Shown one piece after another: positions 1,470 to 62,800 of a stretch of DNA of 64,000 nt. Position 1 is the stretch's first letter. Every line of letters begins with the position of its first letter. The notes under the pieces are model-generated. The model was not told the DNA's origin. It did no database searches and saw only the letters and a program-made list of their open reading frames with translations. A program made the position numbers and the translations under genes. This stretch comes from Podarcis vaucheri (lineage: Eukaryota), in the NCBI GenBank assembly GCA_965113315.1, contig OZ220372.1, one strand, 5' to 3'.

Positions 1470-3964
1470 AAATGGAAGAGAGGGGATGTGGAAGAAAAGA
1501 AGTAGGTTTCAGTTCATAGTGTTTTAATAAGATATATCTAATTTTCATTTTAAATGTCAGTGTGCAGCTATTTTTTGTATATTGAAATTTGAGAGATGAA
1601 GGTGTCTGTGAGGAAGCAACTCCAAAGTGCTGGGGATTTCCCTTTCTAGCAGTGGGTGGAGCTGTTGGGGTCCCACAGCCTGCCTGCCTGCCCTTCCCCA
1701 GACTATTGTGCTTCAGTGAGAAGCAGCAAGAGGGGCTTCTAGGAACCCAGTACCCATCCTTTTCTGCCTCCCACCCCCAACCTGGTCTTCCCTACTGGTT
1801 GGCCAGGCTTTTGACTGGAGGAGCAGGCAGCAGTATCACCAGTGCCTTCCACTTTGATGACAGCAAGCAAAACCTTGGCTTTAGATCTCTGCCAGGAGTC
1901 CACACAACCCTTGTCATCCCTTCTTATGATATGTAGTCATTGCTAGATCAATGAAGTGCCATATCTATTCAAAATAATTATATTTTATCCCACCATTCCT
2001 TCAGTGAGCTCAAAGCAACGTACATAAATTTATCTTCACCACAACCCTTTGAGAGGTAGGATAGGCTGAGAAAGTGTAACTGGCTTACAGTCATGCAGTG
2101 AGCTTTATGGTTGAGTGGAGGTTGATTAAAAACTTTGATTGACTACTTGGGTTCATTAGTTAGTTCTTATTTCAGTCCTACTTATTTGCATTCTTTTGTG
2201 TTTATTGACTACACTTTATCAGGCACAGGTCTCTTGGCTGCTAGGGTTTACCTGTAGCATAGATGTTGGACTACTACTCCCATCATTCCCCATAATTTTT
2301 CTTTGGGTGTGTGTGTGTACATTTTTCCAATTATTGTCGTAGATACACAGAGTAAGCATTCTGTGTAGTATGCTGTGATTCAAACTATAAAACACTTCAT
2401 ACTGTACTTTTAATCTATTATTAGTTAAATGCCCATCACTCTGATAATACAGAGGGCCTTGTTAATGGAGGCCAGTCCTCCTGTTGTTATGGTTAGCAGG
2501 TTGGTTTAGGCCCCTGGTGCAGTGCTTTATTTTTGGAAACCATTTTGGGATAAAGTGTAGGGGCACAAGGAGGTAGTTGAGATGGAGGCCTGGCTTGTTC
2601 CAGTGTCACAGTGATTCCAGTGACAGGGATGAGGGTCAGGTTTTATCCCCTACCCCCCGTTATGTTCCAGAGTGAAACCAGATTAGAAACTTCAGTGATT
2701 AAGTGGTATATAAATAGCTTAAATATATGCATACATACTTTGTTCTAATGAAAGCATTGGAGAACTGAACTAGCCCATGTTTGCATAGTTCAGCCCTGAT
2801 TCTCCATCTTGGTGTGTTAAAACCGTAGAGATTGACTATTGCTAATCTTAATAGAAATTTAGAATCAAGGCACCTTTGCTGATTCTAGTATAGAATAGTG
2901 GCTGCCATAATAGTAGAAATGCATAAATTGTCCTCCATCCTTGCCTCTGTGCACGTTCAGTGTAAGTATATTCAGGTATGTTATAATGACACTCCTTGAC
3001 CTTGCTTTTGAGGGAAGCCATGCTTGATCCTTCTGGGTTTCTCTTCCAAAAATTGCTTACATAAAACAAGCACATGATAAACAAACAATAAAGGCTTTAA
3101 TCACAAGAGTGAGAAGAAAGAGGACTGAATTTACATTATGAGGTCTGGTATCTTGCCTTATTAATAGTATGGCCTGACCATAATGCCAGTGTGCAGTTCA
3201 GAGAGATTCTAGAAGTTGTTCATTTTAACTTGGCAGTGTTGCAAATTAGAGAAACCACAAAAGGCCAGACGCTTCTGCTTGTTGTGTCCTCCAATCCCAT
3301 TCATTCAGATTATATGAGTATTTTGTTAAACTTCCTTAATTTAAACAGTTCAGTATGTATAAGGCAAGGCTGAGGGCTGCATATTCTAGATATATAGTTC
3401 ATTTATGAACTTACTCAACTTGTGAAATGCCTAGGGAGGAGAGGGATTGCAGTCAAGGACCTTCTAGGTCCCATTTTACTCACTTAAATGGGTCCTATCT
3501 TTGCATTTTTGGGCATTCTTCCTAGAACAGATTTGAGGTCAGAGCAGTTTGTTCCAAAACAGATCTGCATTTGAGGTTGGAGCAGAAAAAAATAGGAAGC
3601 TTTTACATTTATTTTTCTCAAGTACACTTAAGCTTGCTTAAATACCCATTCAAAACAACCCATCTCCTTTTAGAATAATGCAAGCTGTTGGCTGTACTTT
3701 TACTTCTTATACTTTTTAAACTAGTGGAATTAAAACCACATTGTGTGCCTTCATTAACTTTCTTGGTATGCTAATAGTGAAATATTATTTTGCCCTGAGT
3801 AAACTTGTAAAATGTGATGGGCTTTGTCAAGACTGGGAGCTAGTAAACCTGCATATACTCTACAGTTGAGCATTTCCTAATGCATTGTGGCTATCTCAAG
3901 CCGCTAACTTAAAAGCACCATTTCTGGATGAAGTTAACATTTTCATTTCTTGAAGGCCAGCATA

Positions 3965-4206: not shown

Positions 4207-6613
4207 TATATGCCACACACAACTCAACTAGAATATCAAGGATAAAACCATAGCTCAGTGGTACGTGTTTTATATGCAGGCACCCAGGCTTATTCCCAAT
4301 ATCTCCATGTAGGGCTTGGAAAAAGCTGTGTCTGAAATGCTGGAGAGCCTCTACCACCAGCCATTGTAGTTCAAGGATGGGAAACCCTTTTCAGCCCAAG
4401 GGCTGCACTGTTTTCATGGGCAAAATTGGGACTTTTCCATTTGTACAGCATGACAGTCTACATTCCAGCTACATGAAAATCAGAAGTGTCTACTGGGCTG
4501 GTAAGAGATGGGTCCTAGGGTGAGTCTCAAGCATTGGCTAGAGAGATCGGGGGGGGGGGGTTACAGTGGTCCCTTGGTTCTGATTCTCCTCCCCCCTTCC
4601 AATTGTAGACAGATACTGAATAGATTGATCAGTGTACGACAGATTTTTATATTTGTTGTATCTGCATTGAGGTTTACTGGCCAATTTCTGCTGGTGCTTG
4701 CTGCCAAGCTCCTCCTCTAAGTTATCTGGCATGCACAAGGAGGCTTGTGGGAGAGACAAGGGTTTCTCTAATTTGTGCTGCATTATGAAGAAAGTAAGAA
4801 ATGGGAGGGGCCTCTCCCACACTTCTATTATCCAAACACCTGGTCAAACTAGAGTAGACCTTGCCTTTCCCTTGAGTCTTTTGATACTTGAAGAGAGCTT
4901 GAGGGAAAGGCAGGATTCTCATCCTTTGTGGTATTTTGGGAACAATGAGGAACCATAGGAATCTTTCTCTACTCCTTCACAATCTCTGACTTAAAAGGAA
5001 GTGAAAGAAGATCAGCCTTTCCCTTGAGCCTTCTGGCAAGTGGAAAAGAGACTGGTCTTATTTGCACTGAAATTTGAATGTGAACAAGTGCAAGAGGGTA
5101 CAGCTGTTTTCTAGCTGCTCCCAATGACAGCAAAAAGGGAGGCTGAGAGAGAAATATTAGATACTGTTGGGCATCCTACTTTCATATTTTGAAATTTCCA
5201 CATGCATTTGGTAGAGAACTTGTGCCATGTAGTAGTTAATGAGACCAGACGAATCTGGGTTCAAATCCCCATTCAGCAATGTAGCTTACTGGACTAGTCA
5301 CTGTCTCTTAGCCCAACCCTACTTCATAGGGTTGTTGTGAGAATTAGCTGACAACTCACATTGAGAAGGGTTTGGGGTTGTTTTTTGAGGAATAAAAAAT
5401 AGTATAGCATATAGGCTACAAAACAGAAACTTTGCAACACCATTATTAGCCACTTCATGCTTTTAAATGTAGAATAAAGCAGATACCAGAATTTTTTTCC
5501 AGTGGGAACATTGTCTTGATACATTTTTCTTTTAAACACTAGCTCAGGAGTGGGAAATATATGTCCCTAAGGCCCAGTTAGGCCTTCCAGACCTTATCAT
5601 TTCGCCTGCAAGGCATATCCACTTGGCATCATATTAATTAGGCCTTTGGCTAATTAAACAGTCTTTGGCTTTTTATGTATTTTTGCGTTTTTATATTGTA
5701 AAACGCCTTGTGATCCTCTCTGATGAAGGGCCGCATAGAAAATGAATGAATGAATGACACCAGGCATGTCCCTAGACTTGAAAAAGGGGTTTGCACACAG
5801 ACACCATCTGGAAAGACGTTGCAATGTTTCAAAATGTTGTGTACCACATGGGTCACCTGGTACTATTGTGATGTTAGGGGATTGAGTGGTGTGTGTGGTC
5901 TTGCCCACCTGTTACATGGCGCACAAGGGTGGAGGGATATGAATCTGGCCTGCTGGCTGGATTCAGTTCCCCACCCCTGCCCTAGTTACCACTTCATGCA
6001 CTATGTTTTACCTTGATGCCCTAATTGTGAAGCTTACCTAAGTGTTGAGAAAAAGACACCCAGAACCCATACAGAGAAGAACCATCACTAGAATTGTACC
6101 ATACTTTAATTGTGTGTCCACGACTAGCACTGCCTCCTCTACAAAAAACATTAGGTGTAGTGGCCTCCACAACAGTTTTATATATAAGGCTAAAAAAAGA
6201 CTACTGCATGTTTCAAGTGCAGTTATCTTCCAAGACAGAAATGTCCATATTGTAGCGCATGTTTAATAAAATTATGTGGTGAAACCACAGGAGACATCTG
6301 CCCTGTGCCTTCCATTATGCATTTTGCAGGTTGTTGGATACTGTCAACACTTCCAAACCACCAAGCAGGAAGGAAATCCACAGAAATTGATTGTGAAAAT
6401 ATAGCCTTGCAAGCACAGTGGTCTTGTGGTTAGTGCTTTACATAGACCTCTGCCTCTCTCTCCTTGTTGTGAGACAAGCAGGATGGAGAGGGCATTGCTG
6501 CAGGAACCCGATCCTTGACTCCTTGTGCTGCTCTGTAGTGCCCCTTTGTGATCAGTGTAGGAATGACATTGATGGAACCCTGTCAACAAGAATTTGAAAA
6601 GACTATAAAGATT

Positions 6614-18600: not shown

Positions 18601-21600
18601 TCTATCTCCAGTGCTCCTTTTTGCTTTCATAATCTCAACTGTTCATTCCAACCTGCAGGCAGGATATGACACAAAGCTTGCTCCAGTTGTCCTTACACCT
18701 GTCTCTGCAGAGAGGCAGAAGACGATATTCTTGTTAATCCTGGTGTTAACTATTTCTTCTCAGGTTGTGACATTGATTTTTTAAAAAATTGTCTAAAGCT
18801 TGTTTGGTTTTTCACTGTCTCATATTTCTTGTGATGTCCAGAACCATCTTCTGCTAATCATTCTTGACCCCTTTCCATTTGTTTAGTGAATAAATGTAAA
18901 TTTATTATTTTCAGTAGGTCAAGTGAACTACCCAAAAGTAGCAGACAGCTCCTCCTTTGATGAGGACAGCAGTGATGCCCTGTCTCCAGAACAGCCAGCT
19001 AGCCATGAATCCCAGGGATCCGTGCCATCCCCAATGGAAGCTCGAGTTTGCGAGTCACTTCCCACCCCCACAACAGCATCCCCTGCTCAGGTGAGATTAT
19101 CATAGCCTTGGTGCCTGCACCAGTCACATAGGTGCCTTTTCCTGGAGGATACAAAAAAGTCCTCTGCAAGGTGTGGATTCCAAAGGAGTCATTTGTGGAT
19201 TAGAGCAGAAACACCTGAATACTGAAGTTATGCTAACGAAAGCTTCTATATTCCTTTACTTTGGGCTGAAAATAGTTGAATGTGAACCCAAAGGGGTATC
19301 CTGTTTGGGGGAGGAATAAGGCCCTGGCCTTGCTCTACAGTGGGGCTGATACTGGGAGCATAGGAAATTGCCTTACACTGAAGCTGACCAATGGTCCTTC
19401 TCATTCAGTATTGTCCAGACTGACTGGCAGTGGTTTCAGAAGAGACATTCCCAGCCCTACCTGGGAGATGCCAGGGATTGAACTTGGGACCTTCTGCGTG
19501 CAAAACAGATGCTATATTACTGAGCTATAGCTCTTCCTCTGAATTGAGCCCATTCACAGTACTGTTTCTTTGTATGCAGCTGCAAGTGAGAAGCAACAAA
19601 TCTGCAAAAATGGAATTTGTCTGCCTTTCCTCTGGGAGTGGCATGTAATCAACACATTTTGACTCCATAAGCTGCTTCCATATCTTGGAAAGGGAAGCGC
19701 TCAGGTGTAGATATGGGCATGTGCATCTCATACTTGGATTTACTGTTGCAGGTCGTGTGTCAGTTGAAAATCAGTGCAGATTCCAGTGAGACCCCTTTTC
19801 TGTCTGAGCAGCCACCAACTCCCCTGCCACCCCTGCCGCCTCCAGTGCCTCCTAATCTCACCAATGGTGTTGTTGCTCCTGCTGCCAAACCACTCCCAAC
19901 CCTTATAAAGGTACCTTTCTATAAAGGGGTTAAATTGATGGGATGTGGGCGTGCTTAAGATTGGGTGGGAATTGTTGGCCTTGTTCTTCTGTAATGCTAA
20001 ACTGCTAGCAGGGAACCTTTTTAAAGAAAAGTCCTTTCCAACTGCTGTGTCCATAAACGCACCCCTACCCTATCCCACATGTTGGGATTTAGCCTCCCAT
20101 TTGCTGTTGTATTGTTACATAATGGGCATGTATTCCGCCCCTGCCCCACCCCCCGAAGAATTTGTAGTTAATTCAGCAAAAGCTAACTGTGTGTCCCCTT
20201 CTGTGGCTTGTAGCTCTACATATTCTGGAAAGGGCCGGTAGCTTGAACCAGCCATATGGAACATGACAGCAAATACTAATAACTGTTTCTGTATTTGCAC
20301 TCTTTATTCTTACTGTCCTGCCCTTTGATTCACCTGTATTTTCACTCTGAATAGCAAAGCCAGTCCAAGTCCTCATGCGAAAAGTCTCAGCGCAGCAAAA
20401 AATCCAAGGAACCGAAACCGAAAGTCAAGAAGTTAAAATATCACCAATACATCCCGCCGGACCAAAAACAGGACAAAGGAGCTCCTCCCATGGATTCATC
20501 TTATGCCAAAATCCTGCAGCAACAACAGCTTTTCTTGCAGCTTCAGATCCTTAATCAACAGCAGCAGCAGCACTACAACTATCAAACCATTCTGCCAGCT
20601 CCACCAAAGTATGGGTTGCTTCATGCTATTATTCCCCCCCCCCCATATCATGGGCGGTCCTCTTTTAGCAGTATCCATCTGTCTCTCCATCCAACCAATC
20701 CCACCCTAGAACGGGAGTTGTACACCATCCACTGTCCCCTCATGCTCAGAGTAGCTTGCCTATGTAGGTATTGCAAACATGTTAGTGCTTGCAGCTTTCA
20801 GAACTAGCTTGCTGTGTGCATGTGGCAGAGGTGCTTGGGACAGTCAAGAAGCTGTGACGTTCTTCAAGAGTTTAGTGTGTTTAAAGTATTTAGATAAGCA
20901 TTCCAGGTGTGGTTGGCAGTATGACTTTGTAAGGTTCTTTTAAGTCCTGTCCATCACCTCTAACTTGAAATGGAAGCTTGTGCATAGAATTGACTCGGTA
21001 TCAGATCACCAGTATTTATTTGATATGAATTCAGTATACACCGTTGTTTCATTTTGCAAGTATATCTGGCTGTTTTCACAACAAGCAGAATATAGGCAAT
21101 GAAGCAAGATATCTGAAATGTCTGCTGTATTAGAATAAAAAGGGCAGTCAATAACAGTTGGCAAGCACACACGGAGGCTGCCAAAATAGAATTTCCAAGC
21201 AACCATGGAGCTAGGAAGGGTCATTTATGTAGCGCTGTATCTTGAGGGCAGACTATTGACCACCTTCTCAAGAGATCATATGGATGTCCATTGGGCTTCC
21301 CAGTAGTAGCAGCAAAGAACAGAGTGTTGTGATCAGTTCCGCTGCCCAGTGTTCAGCTCCTGCTTTCCTCTCCCTTCAGGCCTCCAGGAGAGCAGCAGAG
21401 CAGCAGTAGTGCCCCACCCATGCGTAATCTCTCCACTGCTGTCAGCAGCACCTCTTCTGTTTCTTCCAGTTCTAATGGATTGATGCGGCAAAACAGCAAC
21501 ACTCCAGTGGGCAAACCAGGAGCTCTCCCTGTTAATCTTGATGACATGAAGGTAAACAAAGCGTCTATTGGCCAGCTTGGTGTTTGATGAAGAAAGTGGG

Positions 21601-24600
21601 GGTATAAATGTTACAAGAAAGAGTGAGCACATATTTTCTTTTAGAAAGGTAGGATATAAATTTGTTTAAATAAGTGCTGTTGCTGCTATTAGCACTGAAC
21701 TTGATGGTCAGTATTGGTATTCAGACCAGATGGTTGAATAAGTAAGTGGCCTTCCTGCTTTTGTGATGAAACTCTTGGACTGATAGTTGTGGACCTGGCA
21801 GCAAGTGATAAATGAAAGATTGAGAACCTGTAACCCTCAAGATATCCTTGAACTCCTCCTTGTGTTAACCCTGAGCATTGGTCACCTTAGTCATGAATGA
21901 TGGCAGCTGGAATTCAACATCTGGAGGGCCAGAGGTTCACCATCTTTGTGCTAAATATAGGATGATTATGCCTATTCAGGCCTGTTCAGTTATTTAAATT
22001 TTTAAAAGATGAGCTAGTTATTTTAATTACTATTTTGTATTGTTCTTACAGTATTTTAGATTCTTTTGGAACTGTATACATTGCTGCATACGAATTGAAG
22101 TAGGTGTTGTAAACGAGATTGTTCTAGCCGATACGGCTTTTGATTGACTGCAAACTGTTTTATGTTAGGTGGCAGAGCTGAAGCAAGAGTTGAAGCTAAG
22201 AGCGCTGCCTGTGTCAGGCACCAAGATGGATCTAATTGAGCGGCTCAAGGCTTACCAGGAGCAGAACGGTGCAGCTGGCCGAGCAGCTGCCGCTCCAAAG
22301 CCCAGTACAGCAATTCTCCCCAAGGCTGCGGATGTGGTGGTGGCCTTCCCAGCTGCCAGGCTGAGCACAGGGCCTGCCCTGGTCAGCGCTGGCATCACTT
22401 CAGCCGAAGTTGTTGTGGCCACAGTCGCTGGCAATGGTGTGATGAAGTTTGGTAGCACAGGCTCGACTCCTCCTGTGTCGCCCACCCCCTCAGAGCGCTC
22501 CCTGATGAGTGCCGGGGATGAGAATTCGACCAGTGGGGATGCCTTTGGGGAGATGGTGACCTCTCCCCTGACTCAGCTTACCTTGCAAGCATCTCCTGTG
22601 CAATTTCTGGTGAAGGAAGAGAGCTCCAAAGGCACCACTTGCAGCTTTAATTCATCATCCAAGGCAGAGCTCTGCTGCAACAACAGTCAGCAAGACATGG
22701 AGGTCCAGGATAAAGACCAGATGTTGCAGGAGAAAGATAAGCAGATTGAGGAGCTCACCCGCATGTTGAAACAGAAGCAGCAGCTGGTGGAGATGCTGAA
22801 GCTGCAGCTGGAGAAAGAAAAGCGGTCTCAGCAGCTCCTGCCTGCCACCTCTGTTGGAGAAGAGGGCACAGCCACAGTCCCCGAGCCGCTGACTTTTGGC
22901 ACCCGTGTCAAGAGTGAAAAGGGCTTTCTGAGTTGCCAGTCTTCAGGGCAGCCCAACTGCCAAACCGACCAATCAAAACCCACACAGACCACTAGCCAAA
23001 TGGACACCTCAGATGAAAGTTCAGTGCCAAAGAAAGCAGTGATGGTGAAGCAAGAGGTGCCAGCTGCCGAAACTGAGCCACCAAGCCAGACCTCAAGCTT
23101 CTTCATTGGCCAGCAAGGTGCAGGCTTCAGTAACCTCATCAAAGGAGCTCCTCCCCCCACCCTCATCACAGATTCCACTGGCACTCACATAGTTCTCACC
23201 GTGACCAATCAGAATGCTGAGAGGCAGGGCCTCTCGCCTCAGGAAAAAGCGGGGAGCTGTCCCTTGCCATTGAGGGTAGGTATACATACAGTGATGATTC
23301 TTGAATGAAGGCTGTCTATCTAACCAGAGGAGGGCTTTCAAACAATGAACAGACTCAAATCACATTGCTTTAGAATTGAATAGTTTTAATTCCTGTAGTT
23401 GTGCTTGTAATTATGGAAGTGGCATGTCAGCACAAAATGATCTCTACAAAGAATGGCTGGGAATTCTCTTTGGGAGTAGCATCAATGTATTGATTGGTTG
23501 ATTACAATTACTGAGTTGCCTGAAGGAAGCCCCCCGCCACTGCCATCCCTCTTCTGGCCACAGGCTAGAGCCAGGTTTTTCCCCTCCGGCCCTCCCTGCA
23601 GGNNNNNNNNNNNNNNNNNNNNNNNNNNNNNNNNNNNNNNNNNNNNNNNNNNNNNNNNNNNNNNNNNNNNNNNNNNNNNNNNNNNNNNNNNNNNNNNNNN
23701 NNNNNNNNNNNNNNNNNNNNNNNNNNNNNNNNNNNNNNNNNNNTGACTTCTGTCAATGTCATTTCATATTTAATTTGCGTCTGCAGCAACTAGATCTAAA
23801 GATTGACTTTTCAGGTGTGGGGTGTGTTAAAAACCTCTAAAATGTTGTGTATCCTTCTCTCTCAGAGAGTGTCCTCACCACCTGTGAAAACATCTATCCA
23901 ACAACCTGTAAGCAGCTCCCAGTCGCCTCTGCAGCCACCGCCAGTGGAGCCCATTAAGAAGGTAGGGAACAAAACAGGTGGTCAGCTAACATCTTGCATT
24001 TTAGGGCAAGTAGCACTTTGAATTGTGCCTGGAAACTAATTAGTATCCAGCGCAGTTGTGCCAGAAGTGGTGTTATATATTAGAGTGCTGGACTAGGACC
24101 TGGGAGAACAGGGTTTGAATCCCCACTCAGCCATGAATTTTGTTCTGTGAGCTGCCCTGAGACCTCCATGTATAGGGCGGTATATAATTTCTGTAAATAA
24201 TATAATAAATAATGAAGCTCATTGAGTATTTTGGGCCAGTCACCATCTCTTAGTCTAGCCTCCCTTGCAGAGTTGTTGTGAGGATGAAATGGGGAGGAGG
24301 AGAACCATGTACACCTCTTTGACCTGATTGAAAGATCAGGATGGTATATCAATGTCGTAAACAAACACCATCCCACCTTGGTAAATAACCTAAGCTGTCT
24401 TCAAAGGCAGCTCCCCTTATAGTGCACTGCAGTAGTCCAGCCAGAGGCTACCAGAGCATAGACAATACAAGTCAGGGACACAGCTGAGCCTCCAGTTGAA
24501 GCTGATAGAGGACACTCAGTACCCCTGATGCCAGTTGAGCCTCAAATGACAGTAATGGGTCCAGACATACCCCCAAGCTATGTACCTTCTCCTTCAGAGG

Positions 24601-54500: not shown

Positions 54501-55915
54501 AAATTGGATAGGATATAAATATGTTAGAAGAGGAAAGTATTAATAGATGGACACAAAAGCTTCAGAAACAGGGGAGAGATAATTAGAGGAAAGAGAAAAG
54601 CATTGCACAGGATGTTCTATGTCAAGTGACACCTGACAGTGCCATCAAGTGGGACATGTGTGAATGCAATAGAATTATTCTAGGTTACACGTGCCCTTCT
54701 TACAACAGCAGATATTTCCCTTATGAAATGCTAAAAATCCATTTCTGTTTAAAGGTATCCCATACAAAATATCACTCTAGTCTCCTCTACATAATATTCT
54801 TAATAATACAAACTAGTTAGCACACACTTATTTAAAGGAGCAAGGCAAAAGAGAAGCATGTATAATACACTGATAACATAAGAAGTCAATAGTAGGAAAA
54901 TTGGGTTACCTATTTATAGCTGGTCATACATTCAACTGTCTTTCCACCCCACCCCTTACCTATGGATTGCTCTGTTGATCTGTGGAGGGGGAATCCAAAA
55001 TCCATTGTAGTTTAATAACATTATTCAGACTTTAATTAGATTAGAAAGTACTAGCTGAAAAACACATTCTAATCTAATTAAACATACATAACCCTTCCTG
55101 ACCCTCCATCTTACAAACTGCAGATTTGGGGGCTTTTAAAATAATATGTCTCTCCCCCCCCTACACACACCGTTTTCCTTGTCCACTTTGGGTAAAAGCT
55201 AGCCTGAAGAACACTTTTTTCTCGAGAATGCAAAAGCTTGCTGGCTACTTTGTGAATTTTAGTTGGCCATCGCAAGGGCATGACAAGACATGTGAGCCTC
55301 ATCAATAAAGGATAAACTAGTCCAGACCTTGGTGACCACCTTCTTAGCCTGTTGAGTTTTGGGAGAGGAAGAAGCAGATACAACGCTGACACCCTCTCTG
55401 CCGGTTTCCATTTAGACCAGATGGTCTGCTATCAGGCATAACAGCTTTGCTTCACCGAAACAGTGCCTCTCCTACTACTGTGGCAGCGTTTGCCTCACGG
55501 CCAGCCCGAGAACAAGACCTTAATTTCGCAGGGGGGGGGGAGGAAAGGCGAAAGGTGCGGGGATTCCTAACCGTCTCCCCAAACCAGATCTACGTCATGT
55601 GACCCCCACCCACCTGATTTATGGCCACCTCTCTTCCACCTGCCTTCACCTGGGCGTGGGGGGGAATTTTATAAGGCTCCGGCCCTCAGTCGGCCACCCA
55701 CATCGGGGGGGGGGTGACCCTCAGCCACTCCGTCCATCCACACACGCAAACAGGACGCCTGTTCTTGGGGGTCCCCGCCTGCTGCTTCTTCCTCCTCCTC
55801 CTCCTCTCTCCACACAAACCCCCTTGCCTGCTCCCCTCTTGTCTCCACCCACCAGCAACCCGTCCCTCTTGCCTGCCCGCCCGCCCGCCCATCCATACGG
55901 ACTCCAGGCTCTCAC

Positions 55916-56065
55916 CTTCGTCCACGGCTTCAGCCTTCCTCCACTTCTTCCCCGCATCTAGTTCCCGTCAGCGCCTACCGAACCCACGACGCATGCGCAG
56001 CAACCAAAGCCCCACCACGACCGTGACGCCAACGCCGCAGAGCATCACGGGAACCGTAGTCGCTA
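55916..56065 (-). promoter_or_regulatory. SGSM3: Putative SGSM3 CpG promoter and first exon
   Basis: CpG-rich. Donor GAAG|gtgaga at 55916/55915. NRF1 motif CGCATGCGCA at 55990-55999. ZNF143/THAP11-type ACTAYRnnnCCCR motif (GACTACGGTTCCCG on -) at 56048-56061. Confidence 0.7.
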
Positions 56066-56910
56066 GAATCTTCGACTCTATAAGCATCGGTATTCAAAGG
56101 GGACGAAGGCTGCTGCTGCCGCCTGCAATCCTGACCCTGGCCCCGCTTGCCTGGGAGCAACTCCTTGGATTTAGCAGGATTAGTTGAGAGAAGAGGCGGT
56201 TAGGATTGCAGCCGAGTTTATTGTTTTAAAAACGGGACTAATTGTCAGCGGGGTAAAAGTGACGACTGCCCTTAAAGAACTATGGAAAAATCCAGGATTT
56301 CAGTGTTTAAACTGTGACTGTGCAGCTCACTCTGTCCGGTGCCCTCCACCCAAAGGGAGAAAATATATAATCAAGAATGGCGTTCATTTTGTTTTCCAAT
56401 TCTGTTCTTATTTTGTCCGAAATTAATATGATAAAATACAGCAGCTATTGCTTCTCCCTGGATTTCCTAAATTATAAGCCTGCTCCATTGCACCCCAAAG
56501 CAGGGCTTTTGAGTGCGGCTGCCCATCTTGTTGAAACAGCATCCCTAAGTAGAAGCATGCCTGCTACTTTTCGTTTTCTGAAACAACGGAAGACATCCTT
56601 GTTTGGACAAGCTTTCCCAGCTGGGTTAATTTTTCTTTAGGTTGATATTTGTATTGTTATTAAACCTATTTTAGTTGTTTTACTTTATGGTTGTAAAATG
56701 CACATGTATGAAAGGCGTTTCAAAAATAAATAGCAACAACAGTGTTAAACTTTTTATTATGATTAAAAAAAGACTGGGCTGAAAATGCAAATCCCTATAT
56801 TGCAAGTGGGTTGCTGAGAGAGGGTGGCTCTCCACATCCCTTGCAATGTGATCTACTATTGTTTATCCTCATGCTGCAAATTGGGGCAGCTCAGCAACTG
56901 AGGCATAGCA

Positions 56911-58325
56911 CAGTGTTTCCCAACCACTGTTCCGCGGCACACTAGTGTGCCGCGAGCTGTTGCCTGGTGTGCCGCGGGAAAAATTAAAAAAAATGAAAGA
57001 TTTTTTTTTTTTAAGTCAAATTTTCGATTGGGGCGCTGTCACTAGATGACCCCTGGGGTTCCCTCCGTCCCTCCCGCTCTGCGCCTCCCTCCTCCTCCTC
57101 CGGGGAGGCCCTTCCTGGCTCTCGGCCAAGGCTTGGCGGCTGCCACTCACTCACTTGCTCGCCCACCCGTCCCTCCATCCCTGCACCCGGCCTCTCCCCC
57201 TCCGTCCCCGGCGCGGGGGCTGCCGGGATCCGTAGTCCCCTCGCCCTTGGGCTCCGCGCCCGCGCAGGGTGCGCGAACTACGTTTCCCAGCATGGCCTGG
57301 TGGGCCGGGCGTTTTGTTTGAAGCGCTCTTCTCCCGGCCATGGAATGAGCGCAGCGGCGGCGGCCGGGCGGGCAGGGGCTCTTCCGCGCAGACCCCGCGC
57401 AGCCTGCCTGCGCCCCCGCGGAGATCGGGCGGCAGGATGGAGCCCGGGGATCCCCGCGGAGGCGGAGGCTGCCCCCCAGGTAGGGCTGTGTCGGGGGTTT
57501 TTATTTTTGCAATGCTGCATCCGCGCCGGAGGGGACGCATCGGACCGCGGGGAGACCCCTTGGCAGGCGTGCAAGGAAATGCATGCGTGCAGGCATTGCA
57601 TGGAGTGCAGTGCAATGCAATGGCAACGCGGCGCCCTGCATGCATGCATGCAACTTCCACCGGCGCTCCGGACTTGGCAGGTGAGGGGGGTCCCCAGTGG
57701 GTGGCAGAGAGAGCCGGGAGGGCGAAGGGGAGCCGGGGGGGGGGAGCAGCGCTGCTCCTCGAGCTGAGCCAGGGGGAAAACTTCGGCGTCGTTGCGCTGG
57801 GTGTTGGAAGCGGAGGCTGGCGGGGGCCCCTCACCTGCAAAATCTGGTCGCCTCTCATATATTTCGTGCATTGCATTCATCGCCCACTTTCTCCTCCAAG
57901 GAGCTTCCGGGGGCGCGTGTGGTTCTCCCTGTGTTATCCTCGCAACAACAGCCCTGCGAGGTGGGTCAGGCGAGTGGCCCAAGGGAGCACCCAGGGATTG
58001 TCCTGGCCAGGTGGGGTGATTTGAACCCTGCTCTCTGCCCGGTCTTCGTCCTCATTTAGCCCCCACATGTGCATGACTGTGCATGACTGAGGTTTCCCCC
58101 CCTCGTCTTGGCTATGGTGTGAGTCTGTGCTGTTAATTAATGGGGTTCTGCCTTCGGAGAAGATGAGCCAGCCCTCAAGGAGGTGATTATGTAATTTGCT
58201 AGCAATTCATGTCCCTCCCAGCGTGACGCTGCGCGCTGACGTCACGGGGCTGTAATGGTGGTGTGCCTCGAGATTTTTTTCATGAAACAAGTGTGCCTTT
58301 GCCCAAAAAAGGTTGGGAAACACTG
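56911..58325. mobile_element. Non-autonomous hAT (Charlie/Buster-like) DNA transposon, 1415 bp, with CpG-island-like cargo
   Basis: Perfect 15-bp TIRs CAGTGTTTCCCAACC / GGTTGGGAAACACTG. 8-bp TSD GCATAGCA (56903-56910, 58326-58333) with central TA. Subterminal GTGTGCC repeats at both ends. No transposase ORF. Confidence 0.93.
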
Positions 58326-59716
58326 GCATAGCACACCCTGTTATACAGCATGCTCTTAAAACAGCAAGTTGGAGGTGGAGCTGAGGCTGACCTGCTGATT
58401 TACAACAGCCCTGCAATGTAGCCACACCCTGTATAGTCCAAGATTGCATACTAGTGTTTCCCACAACTTTAGTTCTCGTGTCATGTGATGGGATCTGAAG
58501 ATGAGGGGATCTGTTTACAATGCAGGAATCTAGTCTGCCTGCCAATTGCTGGGGCTTATGAGCAGGAAAGAGGACTACTGTGCGCATGTCCTGCTTGTGG
58601 GCTTCCCAGGGGCAACTACTCAGCCAGTGAGGGAAGCATGATGCTGTTCCAAAGAAGTCTTTGGTCTGAACCAGCAGGGCTCTCTTTATGTTCTTAAATC
58701 TGGTTAAACTGAGCCCTCGGCCCCACCTCGTTCCAAGCCCAGTGCCGGAGCTCAAATGAATACAGACACCTTGTGACTGTCCGGAAAATGTGACATACTT
58801 TTATTCCTCCAAAAGCGTAAAATGAAGGAGAAAGAGGGAAATAAACAAGACCAGCTGTGCAGTGCGACTAGTTTCTTTCTCTAAGCTTCCTATAAGTCTC
58901 TTGTGTTACTATCATACTTTGCTGACAAAGAATGTTACGGACTATTTACTTTTCTGCACCTCCATTCTTCTATGTTCCTTTCCCTACAGCAGTTCCCAGC
59001 GCCCCTTGCAGGCCCTTATAAAACGAACAGTAAAATACATAATTGTGTGACTTTTAACTGATCAATTGATTAAATCTGTGTAAAATCCTATATGAATAAC
59101 AGTTCTCATGGGGAAATGAATTATTTCTTGCCTTGAGAGATGGGAACCATATAGCACATCCCAGCAGGAATTCCCTTCTATCTGAGAGAGAAGAGGCATT
59201 CATTCCTCTTCTACTAAACAATGCAACCCTAGGAGTAAAATGCCCCCTTGCTTTCTGATTCCAACCCTGTGCTTAAAACAATTTCTAACATTCCTGCCTC
59301 AGGAACAATGTAACAACCATGAATGAAATGAGTGATTTATAACAAGAGTCCAATATTTGTTTGTGTGCATGAACTCTTTGAAGTTGCACCAACCTCTATA
59401 ATTTCAGAGCAGCTCGGTCTAACCATAAAATAGCTTCATCTCTTTGTATGTCAGCCACTCCCGTTTTATAGCCAGGAAACTGAAGACACTGTACACCAAG
59501 AAACACTACACTTTATCCTACAGATCTCCCACTTCAACCAACAATTGCTTTTGCAAATTCTAACTCCACGCCCCATGACAATTGCAATACAAGTTTTAGC
59601 TTTAATTCAACTGCATATCCTTCTCCCAGAAAAGTTACGTGTCCTTAAGATTTCCTAGACTTGCCACAAAAACCTCTAAGACTCAGTTCACATATCACAT
59701 CTGTTTTGAAATATAT

Positions 59717-59854: not shown

Positions 59855-62800
59855 CTGTTATGGAAGAAGGGAGGAAAAAGGCATTAAAAGAATAACTACT
59901 CGTTTAGCCTTAGCATATTAACCAATTACTCTATTCTGCACACTTCCCTGTAACTCAGAACACGCAGGAACTGGATAAGGCAAAGACTAGATTTGTCCCC
60001 ACCCAAAGCACACCATTAACAACGAAAAGGAAATGTTAGAAGTACAGAAAGTGAATTCTTCCAGATATGGGAGATATGCCAAGAATCTTTCTCAAACCGC
60101 TCCTGTTAAAGCCTAGCTTTGCTTAACTGGTAAATGAAGAACTGGCTGATACAGGCTAGTGGACTACAATCTGCACTGAACCAGTAAGACAGGGTGGGCA
60201 GTGGCATAGCGTGGGGGGTGCAGGGGGGGCGGCCGCACCGGGCGCAACATCTGGGGGTTAGGGTTAGGGGGCACAAATCCACGGGTTCGGGGGCGCAAAT
60301 TACTTGCCTTGCCCCAGGTGCTGACAACCCACGCTACGCCACTGAGGGTGGGACAGGCAATTAAATAAAAAGGCAGGAATATGTAGTTAGAGGAAGGTTG
60401 GGTAGCAATGGATGAAGGGAATGTCTAAATAGAATAAGGAGGGGGAAAGTGGTTCATTCACAGGGGAGCTTATGGCAGAAGAAACAAAAACAAGGGGTAA
60501 TAGATGAATTTTTTTCAAATGGAGTGAGAAAGGTTGCAAAGAAAGACAAAGAAAGAAACAGTCACAGGTAGAGAACATAAAGCTTTAGGTGGACTAGAGT
60601 CCACGGCAACCTCATAAGAACTTTCTTGTTCTTACCTGCTGGGAAGCACGTCCAGTAAAGGACTTGGGCTCCAAAAGAGATTCCAGTTCTCCATGAATAG
60701 GGCTGAAATAAGGATCTGCACGAATACGTTCAATGAGGTCATTATCACCCCCTTCTTGCTTCACAACAGCAGCTGCCTGCTGGGACAGAACCCTTATCTT
60801 CTCATGACAATCCTATGAAAAAGAAGTCAACATCACATTACAAACCATCAGCAAACACGGTAAACATCCTAAGTATCATATACAGGATTTACAAAAAGCT
60901 AATGTAGTTGTGGCTCATGATAAAAAAATCCAAAATCCATTGTAGAGCTGTATCTATTAGGCCAACCAAAATGCCAGAATATAGTCAGGGAGGAAGAGGG
61001 AAAAGAGCGTAGTGGGGGAAGTGGCTTAGTATTTAAGCCATAGTAAATCTGAATTGGTCTTGGTCCTAAGATGGAGTGCAGGAACTCATCAAAAAGAGGC
61101 TGAGCTAGGCTACCTGGAAATGAACAACATTTGAACTGTGTGTGACAGAATTGTTGCAATGCCTGAATTCTCTCTTCAGTGGGTCTTTTTATCATTCAGT
61201 CCATTCATAATACCGTATTTTTCGCTCTATAACACGCAGATTTTTTCTCCAAAAAAGGAAGGGGAAATGTCTGTGCGTGTTATGCAGCGAATGTGTGGTC
61301 GCTGGAGCCGAAAAATAAGGCAAAAATCAAACCGCGCTTCAGGGAGAAGGGAGCTCCGTGAGACAGGAAGCTGTTGCTTTCCTGCATTCTGCCTCAGGGT
61401 CTTACTGCGCTCCCTGCTCTGTTTCGTTACTGTGTTTGCTCAAACGGAACAAAGAGCAGGGGAAGCCCCTCCCCTCCAGGCAAGTAGAGGGGAAAGCAGA
61501 GCGTCCGTCCTTCTATCCTCTCCCTGCTCCGGAGGAACAATGTTTGTGAAGGGAAGAGAGATTACAGGTTCGGCTTAAAATTCTGATTTGACTTCCTGCT
61601 TTTTGTTTTTGGAGACACACAGCATTCAAATATGCTTTCTTCCATTTAAAAGGATGAAATCCTTAAACAGTGGCTGGCTTGTGTGGGTGGGTGGGGGGAA
61701 ACTTTTGCCTTCCTTTCCTCACGTTATAGCCCTCTCCTGCATTCTTAGCCTTCTGTGTTTTTCCTTCCCTCCCCACTTAAAATGTGGTTACAAAGCATGG
61801 ATCCACATGGATCCTCAGGATCTTTGCATTGGGTCACCCCAAATTCACCATCAGAGCACACAGCATGTCCATGGCTACAGCCTGCCCCCCCCCCAAAAAA
61901 ATCACGCACCCACTGTTGCCTGGGGCTGCAATGGTGCAAAAACGTGGTTACAAAGCATGGATCCACATGGATCCTCAGGATCTTTGCATTGGGTCAGCCA
62001 AAATTCACCATCAGAGCACATAGCATGTCCATGACTACAGCCTGTCCCCCCCCCAAAAAAAAATCACGCACCCACTGTTGCCTGGGGCTGCAATGGTGCA
62101 AAAACGTGGTTAAAAAGTATGGGTCCACATGGATCCTCAGGATCTTTGCATTGGGTCAGCCAAAATTCACCATCAGAGCACATAGCATGTCCATGGCTAC
62201 AGCCTGCCCCCCCAAAAAAATCACGCACCCACTGTTGCCTGGGGCTGCAATGGTGCAAAAACGTGGTTACAAAGCATGGATCCACAGGGATTCTCAGGAT
62301 TTTTGCATTGGGTCACCCCAAATTCACCATCAGATCACATGTCTGTGGCCACAGCATGAAGCACAAAAATGATACCTCCACTGTTTCATTCAGAATATTT
62401 TTTCCCTTGTTTTCCTCCTCTAAAAACGATGTGCGTGTTATGGTCAGGTGCGTGTTATAGAGCGAAAAATACGGTAGTTCTTTTTAATTACACACAAACT
62501 GCAATAAGAAATAGCAAAATTCCATCCTCTTCTGAAACTTTCAGTATTTTGTGTAGCCAATCACTGCAGAATATTGTCTCAATAACCTCTCAGTTCTAAA
62601 TGCATCAAGGGAGCATAACAAGTACAGAAATAAGATAAAAGTAGCAGCAAACAATGCAACAAAAAAAAATTATTTCAGACTTCTCTTAAAAAAAAATGTG
62701 TAGGGTGACAATTTGTCTAATTGCTAACATTCATACGATACGAAGAAAACAAATCTAGAGGCAGCAGGGATCTTGGGTAAAGAAGTGAACGAGTTAGTGC

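Follow-up and report, generated by a model that had tools for sequence, protein, structure and literature searches.

The element at positions 56911-58325 of the window, by which is meant the whole 64-kb stretch of lizard DNA analysed here, very probably belongs to a non-autonomous hAT family of great abundance and recent activity, whose members share a CpG-rich interior. To our knowledge, no description of this family exists. The sequence-only reading of the same DNA had taken the element for a 'Pack-hAT', a transposon whose promoter cassette had been copied from elsewhere in the genome; what looked like a 'captured promoter' is in fact repetitive sequence and no one-time event.

The element is 1415 bp long and is bounded by perfect inverted ends and a perfect 8-bp duplication, GCATAGCA, as had been claimed from the letters alone. 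The terminal pattern CAGTGTTTCCCAACC, with up to two mismatches allowed, is matched twice in the 64-kb window, at the two element ends, against 0.21 matches expected. The 8-mer by itself is common (three matches in the window against 2.8 expected); it is its position flush against both ends that makes it a hAT insertion signature. The ends begin CAGTG and fit the YARNG-type short terminal inverted repeats that are the rule for hAT elements. The GCATAGCA of this copy departs from the nTnnnnAn target consensus, and the flank consensus of other family copies, read beside their ends from contig loose ends, is CTCTAGAG/CTCTAGAC, which fits nTCTAGAn, the target preference of Charlie-type hAT elements. 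None of the six interior open reading frames of 91-251 aa matches a Pfam family at E up to 1, a word search for relatives of the 251-aa frame (57269-58021, the longest on the + strand) is blank, and Rfam at E up to 1 gives only two sub-threshold chance matches on the element. The element is a non-autonomous hAT transposon with no transposase of its own. Within the 64-kb window it has no second copy: a blastn search of the element and seven of its sub-pieces against the masked window returns short chance matches only. Nor does the window hold an autonomous partner with these ends that encodes a hAT transposase (BED finger, DDE, hAT dimerisation domain).

Inside the ends lie two arms (Table 1) in which the heptamer GTGTGCC recurs, five of its ten matches in the window falling within ∼65 bases of the two ends. 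These repeats fit, as expected, the predicted subterminal transposase-binding repeats of hAT elements. The right arm also holds a perfect TGACGTCA palindrome, a CRE/ATF-type site, at 58237-58244, which is kept by one sister family (break at 58211). At 58453-58463, 128 bases to the right of the element, there is a third exact AGTGTTTCCCA (context CTAGTGTTTCCCACAAC); no partner end was found for it, and it may be what is left of the terminus of an older, related hAT element.

Table 1. Coordinates of the hAT element's parts and of neighbouring features in the window
Feature	Positions	Strand	Remarks
Native CpG island with composite M4/SBS site (56036-56060, -)	55800-56200	-	∼0.7-0.9 kb left of the element; present in the relatives' empty-site contig
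Left target site duplication copy, GCATAGCA	56903-56910		Single in the empty allele (joint 56901->58325)
Left terminal inverted repeat, CAGTGTTTCCCAACC	56911-56925	+	15/15 complementary to the right end
Left subterminal arm	56926-57045	+	Three GTGTGCC/GGCACAC motifs (56936-56973), A/T-rich run; sister families diverge after 56979
CpG-rich interior	57050-57960		GC 0.687, 81 CpG, observed/expected 0.75 against 0.25 in the whole window; family-wide
Predicted composite M4 (57224-57236) and Staf/ZNF143-type site (57212-57229)	57212-57236	-	Two mismatches to the SBS consensus; in register
Predicted composite M4 (57277-57289) and Staf/ZNF143-type site (57284-57301)	57277-57301	+	Three mismatches; divergent from the 57212-57236 site
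Short tandem array	57563-57619		Period 18, 3.2 copies, GCATGC-rich
Decayed MIR-like SINE remnant, in the family interior	57915-58060	+	Alignment to the SINE copy at 5170-5400 (-)
Right subterminal arm	58190-58310	+	Two GTGTGCC (58261, 58291), TGACGTCA palindrome; sister families join at 58211 and 58253
Right terminal inverted repeat	58311-58325	-	15/15 match to CAGTGTTTCCCAACC
Right target site duplication copy, GCATAGCA	58326-58333		Single in the empty allele
ADSL (adenylosuccinate lyase) C-terminal-domain exon	60615-60764	-	Pfam ADSL_C, E 1.1e-8, above cut-off

The abundance of the family is evident from the locus 56000-59200, to which contigs from DNA runs of three organisms (A, B and C) and reads from one RNA run (organism C) were aligned. 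Summed contig depth, a rough proxy for copy number, reaches 0.51-1.33 million in every bin of 56856-58353 in X1 and X2, two related genomes, against 83 and 62 in the flanks. Flank depths of this size indicate single-copy DNA, and a ratio near 10^4, to be read as an order of magnitude only, therefore means that the element is highly repeated. Loose ends of low agreement (0.42-0.65, that is, many different flanks) fall exactly at 56911 and 58325/58326, so the repeat unit ends at the inverted repeats. In X1 and X2, depth is 0.5-1.1 million over the interior and 1.3 million at the ends. An interior as abundant as the ends, in a unit that stops at the inverted repeats, must be a core held in common by a large family. 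One criterion of plant Pack-TYPE elements is an interior less repetitive than the ends (PMC8903248), which these two depths do not show.

The family is also coherent. At 11 listed sites, nearly all of the family depth differs from the letter in the 56911-58325 copy, and such uniform majority differences indicate one family and not miscellaneous GC-rich DNA; these sites, like the loose ends given here, are the best supported, with 51 further differences and 600 further loose ends beyond them. The contigs over the element are ∼90 bases long, and the linkage of ends to interior is inferred from tiling, break positions and deletion joints, not read from whole copies. Internal-deletion derivatives, which are usual for cut-and-paste elements, occur in the family, with joints 57075->58145 (depth 1848) and 56963->58250. 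High-agreement breaks in the interior, among those listed, lie at 57088, 57456 and 57467 and are consistent with short tandem units that vary in copy number. At 57456-57467, family copies have different numbers of GGAGGC units, as seen in loose ends and back-joints in all three DNA runs; this variable tandem falls inside the + strand exon that had been proposed. The CpG-rich interior belongs to a family of ∼10^4 copies and was not acquired by the 56911-58325 copy itself.

A different class of break marks the arms. Among those listed, high-agreement loose ends lie at 56979, 58211 and 58253-58255, with an agreement of 0.95-0.98 behind 56979 and of 0.77-0.98 before 58211 and 58253, so that other abundant families must share the terminal 70-115 bp and then continue into other interiors. 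Sister elements with the same ends and different cargo, for which the sequence-only reading had suggested a search with the termini, thus exist. The right-end bin in organism C is ∼10 times deeper than the interior, which indicates that sister families dominate there. In metagenome contigs, the exact 23-base pattern of the left end finds two near-identical contigs that share ∼36 terminal bases without the interior: Ga0136643_10330030 (L001:1098-1133, -) and Ga0123354_10206628 (L002:1043-1078, +). Both carry a hAT-like end that is identical to the family's first 26 bases and is preceded by CTCTAGAA, and the surrounding DNA is AT-rich and, by eye, arthropod-like. The same transposon lineage may be present in a very different host, which raises the question of horizontal transfer. 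In viral contigs, neither the 23-base left-end pattern nor an interior 24-mer has a match.

The age of the insertion is bounded by relatives that lack it. In X1, a 6252-bp contig (record 1) runs through 56000-56901 and then 58325-59200 unbroken, with three differences in 1778 bases (0.17%), and in X2, whose genome is ∼2% diverged in the flanks, an 833-bp contig (record 10) shows the same empty site. The skip of 1423 bases is accounted for by the element (1415 bp) and a single 8-bp duplication copy. The orthologous empty site with a single GCATAGCA, which had been named as a check, is thereby found in two related genomes, and the converse arrangement, an orthologous CpG island that lacks the inverted ends, is excluded by the emptiness of the site in X1 and X2. 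Excision of hAT elements normally leaves footprints, so a clean empty site represents the ancestral unoccupied state; as the site is empty in a genome only 0.17% diverged, the insertion is younger than that split. The insertion is very recent or still polymorphic. Mobility is documented by the precise empty site in two related genomes together with a family depth thousands-fold above single copy.

The element lies between the 3' end of ADSL and the next CpG-island promoter, ∼0.85 kb from the M4 site of that promoter. The native island at 55800-56200 probably provides the promoter and first exon for the neighbour of ADSL, which by human synteny would presumably be SGSM3. Within this island, CGCATGCGCA occupies 55990-55999, and the minus strand has a GTGAGA donor near 55913. 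A landing site close to an open promoter would be in keeping with known hAT habits. Several other features of the window stand apart from the element. Contig depth in X1 and X2 rises from 83 and 62 in the surrounding DNA to 2244-3154 at 58568-58674, marking another moderately repeated element. Within the ADSL region, at 61745-62460, identical peptide strings recur two or three times in open reading frames of both strands, the mark of a tandem repeat of ∼160 bp. The only above-threshold Rfam match in the window is a tRNA at 19463-19534 (-, 36 bits), which could be a tRNA gene or the head of a SINE, and a run of 141 N occupies 23603-23743.

By composition, the interior has the grade of a CpG island. 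With thresholds of GC above 0.55, observed/expected CpG above 0.6 and a length of more than 500 bp, the 911 bp at 57050-57960 qualify, and every 200-bp window over 57001-58000 passes both compositional limits. The whole island falls between the inverted repeats at 56911 and 58325, inside the transposon, as the earlier reading had it. The differences from the family majority are informative about its methylation: 7 of the 11 listed are CpGs lost in the 56911-58325 copy, six of them by transition. On the sites listed, ∼7% of CpGs have changed against roughly 0.35% of other sites, a roughly 20-fold higher rate of CpG loss, these counts being minimal ones drawn from the best-supported differences. 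Such a pattern is the signature of methylated DNA and suggests, indirectly, germ-line methylation, pointing away from a protected island; as the insertion itself is very recent, the losses arose in the source lineage. Protection as the cause of the CpG richness was rejected on this pattern, and the richness is best explained, with part of the case demonstrated, by the youth of the family more than by protection.

The interior contains promoter-like motifs. The core-promoter motif M4, ACTAYRNNNCCCR, binds THAP11/HCF-1 and overlaps ZNF143 sites (PMC5006282), and the M4 and SBS definitions used here are taken from that work. Exact ACTAYRNNNCCCR has five matches in the 64-kb window against 0.57 expected. 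Two of them lie in the element on opposite strands, 40 bp apart, and the native CpG island contains a third, at 56048-56060; all three run in register into an SBS-like half with two to three mismatches. The SBS consensus alone, at up to three mismatches, was discarded as evidence since it is too loose (50 matches against 28 expected), and only its register with M4 is used. The two divergent ZNF143-type motifs of the sequence-only reading hold up, with an exact M4 in each. The predicted motif pair of the element is real and non-random, and of the kind that the native promoter next door appears to use.

The two first exons proposed beside these motifs fare less well. The candidate exons encode 8-45 residues, of low complexity. 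On the + strand, an ATG at 57437 opens a short frame that reaches a GT donor at 57479/57480 with a score of 7/9. On the minus strand, an ATG at 57178 is followed by eight codons and, after 57155, by a GTGAGT donor with a score of 8/9. The signals are present as described (ATG 57437, GT 57480, minus-strand GTGAGT at 57155), but their frequency is not above chance: the + strand of the element has six RNNATGG, and rival donors at 57680/81 (+) and 57835 (-) score above the 7/9 donor of the + strand and equal the 8/9 donor of the minus strand. The minus-strand series of ATG, eight codons and GTGAGT mirrors the + strand layout and recalls the six-codon NUBPL fragment of HelibatN3, a likeness for which more than chance cannot be claimed.

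RNA from organism C gives these exons no help. Of 774 reads, 711 fit only partly, and 89% of the placed sequence continues into unlike sequence, with breaks at the element ends or at the join points of sister families; on either strand, a few reads fall in each bin of the interior. In this one run of one tissue, from what may be a different species and with a library that does not map starts, read starts formed no clusters, and the reads showed none of the joints listed, including those at 57479/57480 and 57155/57154, so that the first exons find neither spliced reads nor read starts there. As a weak negative, the RNA resembles other transcripts reading through many embedded copies and does not resemble initiation within the element.

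At the right of the interior lies the MIR-like SINE remnant that had been noticed in the letters and is borne out by alignment. It has 69% column identity to the copy at 5170-5400 (-), and its two signature blocks (57938-57965 and 58016-58028) match 5342-5318 and 5269-5257 in the same order, at comparable spacings of 78 and 73 nt, respectively. On the interior's left edge, ACTAGATGACCCCTGGGGTTCCCTCC (57041-57066) recalls what we take to be the tail of another common squamate SINE; a second copy of it was sought in the 64-kb window and none was found.

The events that would lead to such an element can be set out as follows: (i) the founder of the family would have acquired host genomic DNA once, for example by template switching in gap repair after excision, (ii) transposase supplied in trans would move the element by cut and paste, as hAT elements work, recognising the 15-bp inverted ends and the repeated subterminal GTGTGCC, (iii) in the spacer that separates the ADSL 3' end from the next promoter, the element entered GCATAGCA and duplicated its eight bases, the step that the empty allele records. 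Host DNA taken up once by the founder is the most likely origin of the interior, at a probability just short of even, because a SINE fragment and housekeeping-promoter motifs are unexpected in transposon-native sequence.

The reading that survives best beside this account extends it without contradicting it. The founder may have captured a bidirectional CpG-island promoter, perhaps with two mini first exons, and then amplified, so that each copy would be a portable promoter and splice-donor cassette able to drive or trap its neighbours. The real divergent M4/ZNF143-type pair, in a motif that is in excess in the window and marks one native promoter, and the MIR-like remnant make a founder origin from a host promoter plausible. 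A Kozak-type ATG, a short frame and a GT donor come after each site (57437-57479, +; 57178-57155, -), sister families carry other interiors between the same ends, and there is a vertebrate precedent in which a captured promoter with six codons and a donor was amplified by a DNA transposon (PMC4778049). Against this stand the chance density of the ATG and donor signals, with two other donors equal or better, the blank results of the word search and of Pfam for any protein or domain similarity, the organism C reads that run off into unrelated sequence with neither starts nor listed joints, and the CpG decay, which suggests methylated copies. On balance, a family-level promoter capture is a tentative proposal, somewhat more doubtful than an even bet. 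Its fullest form is unlikely: a mobile lizard hAT family founded by capture of a bidirectional housekeeping promoter with paired THAP11/ZNF143 sites and two mini exons with donors, dispersed as ∼10^4 cassettes of which some would have become new promoters or exon traps, and forming one of several sibling families with different gene starts.

Improbable, too, is an interior native to the transposon, in which an autonomous hAT lost its transposase gene by internal deletion and kept its 5' part (promoter and leader) and its 3' part, as in Ds-del. Internal deletion is the commonest route to a non-autonomous hAT and further deletions are seen in this family, and the M4/SBS sites would serve as the germ-line or housekeeping promoter that a transposase gene requires. 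The MIR-like SINE fragment is nevertheless unexpected in a transposon's own sequence, no trace of transposase coding is found by Pfam in any long interior open reading frame, and the sister families keep only 70-115 terminal bases. A host origin of the interior is preferred to this deletion reading.

An assembly artefact, in which a repeat was wrongly placed at 56911-58325, would account for the filled allele being seen only in the window's own assembly: it is absent from all four runs, and both informative runs show the empty site. The artefact is nonetheless very improbable, as a perfect 8-bp duplication that is single in the empty allele and surrounds intact ends is what a real hAT integration leaves, and an assembler would not produce it. 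Least credible of all is a private capture, in which this particular element took a host promoter as unique or low-copy cargo: only the gene-like look of the interior speaks for it, and it is refuted by depth, since in two genomes the interior stands ∼10^4 times above single-copy flanking DNA, matches the ends in abundance and has one coherent majority consensus.

The clean pair of filled and empty alleles suggests that a large hAT family is active, or was very recently so, in this lizard lineage. Because the family carries CpG-island-grade sequence with housekeeping promoter motifs, thousands of repeat copies could be miscalled 'CpG islands' or 'promoters' in annotation and in epigenomic analyses. 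Any copies that escape methylation would readily supply new promoters.

Among known systems, the nearest in structure are the non-autonomous hAT elements of the maize Ds1 type, the mammalian Charlie-derived MER1 type and Myotis nhAT, with which this family shares short ends in CAGTG, an 8-bp duplication, subterminal repeats and the lack of a transposase. It is also like them in an interior unrelated to a transposase gene, in internal-deletion derivatives and in the nTCTAGAn-like flanks of other copies. Unlike typical members of that class, the 56911-58325 element has a long interior (0.9 kb) of CpG-island grade with paired housekeeping-promoter motifs, a very high abundance, and an insertion that is absent from a genome only 0.17% diverged. 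Active cut-and-paste elements are uncommon in amniotes.

The promoter motifs have their counterparts in the M4/SBS2-type elements bound by THAP11-HCF1 and ZNF143 (PMC5006282, PMC3627581): both sites in the element are exact ACTAYRNNNCCCR joined to an SBS-like half, as is the native site at 56036-56060, and are predicted sites of this type. Plant Pack-TYPE elements, which include Pack-hAT, are defined by proven host-gene similarity and have interiors less repeated than ordinary transposons (PMC8903248). The lizard family resembles them in an interior that is not transposon-like and may be host-derived, and in different interiors between the same ends. In contrast with Pack-TYPE elements, its interior is as repeated as its ends, its host is an animal and the host source is putative.

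If a capture by the founder is true, the closest functional analogue would be HelibatN3, a Myotis Helitron family that carries the NUBPL promoter, six codons and a splice donor; Helitrons have captured the promoters of 15 genes and amplified them to 4,690 copies in all (PMC4778049). The two would then have in common a promoter, a mini first exon and a donor in thousands of vertebrate copies. HelibatN3 is a rolling-circle Helitron with a demonstrated parental gene and demonstrated promoter activity, whereas the 56911-58325 element is a cut-and-paste hAT with a putative promoter. A capture at the level of the family would make it the cut-and-paste counterpart of the bat Helitron, with the copy described here placed less than 1 kb upstream of a native promoter.
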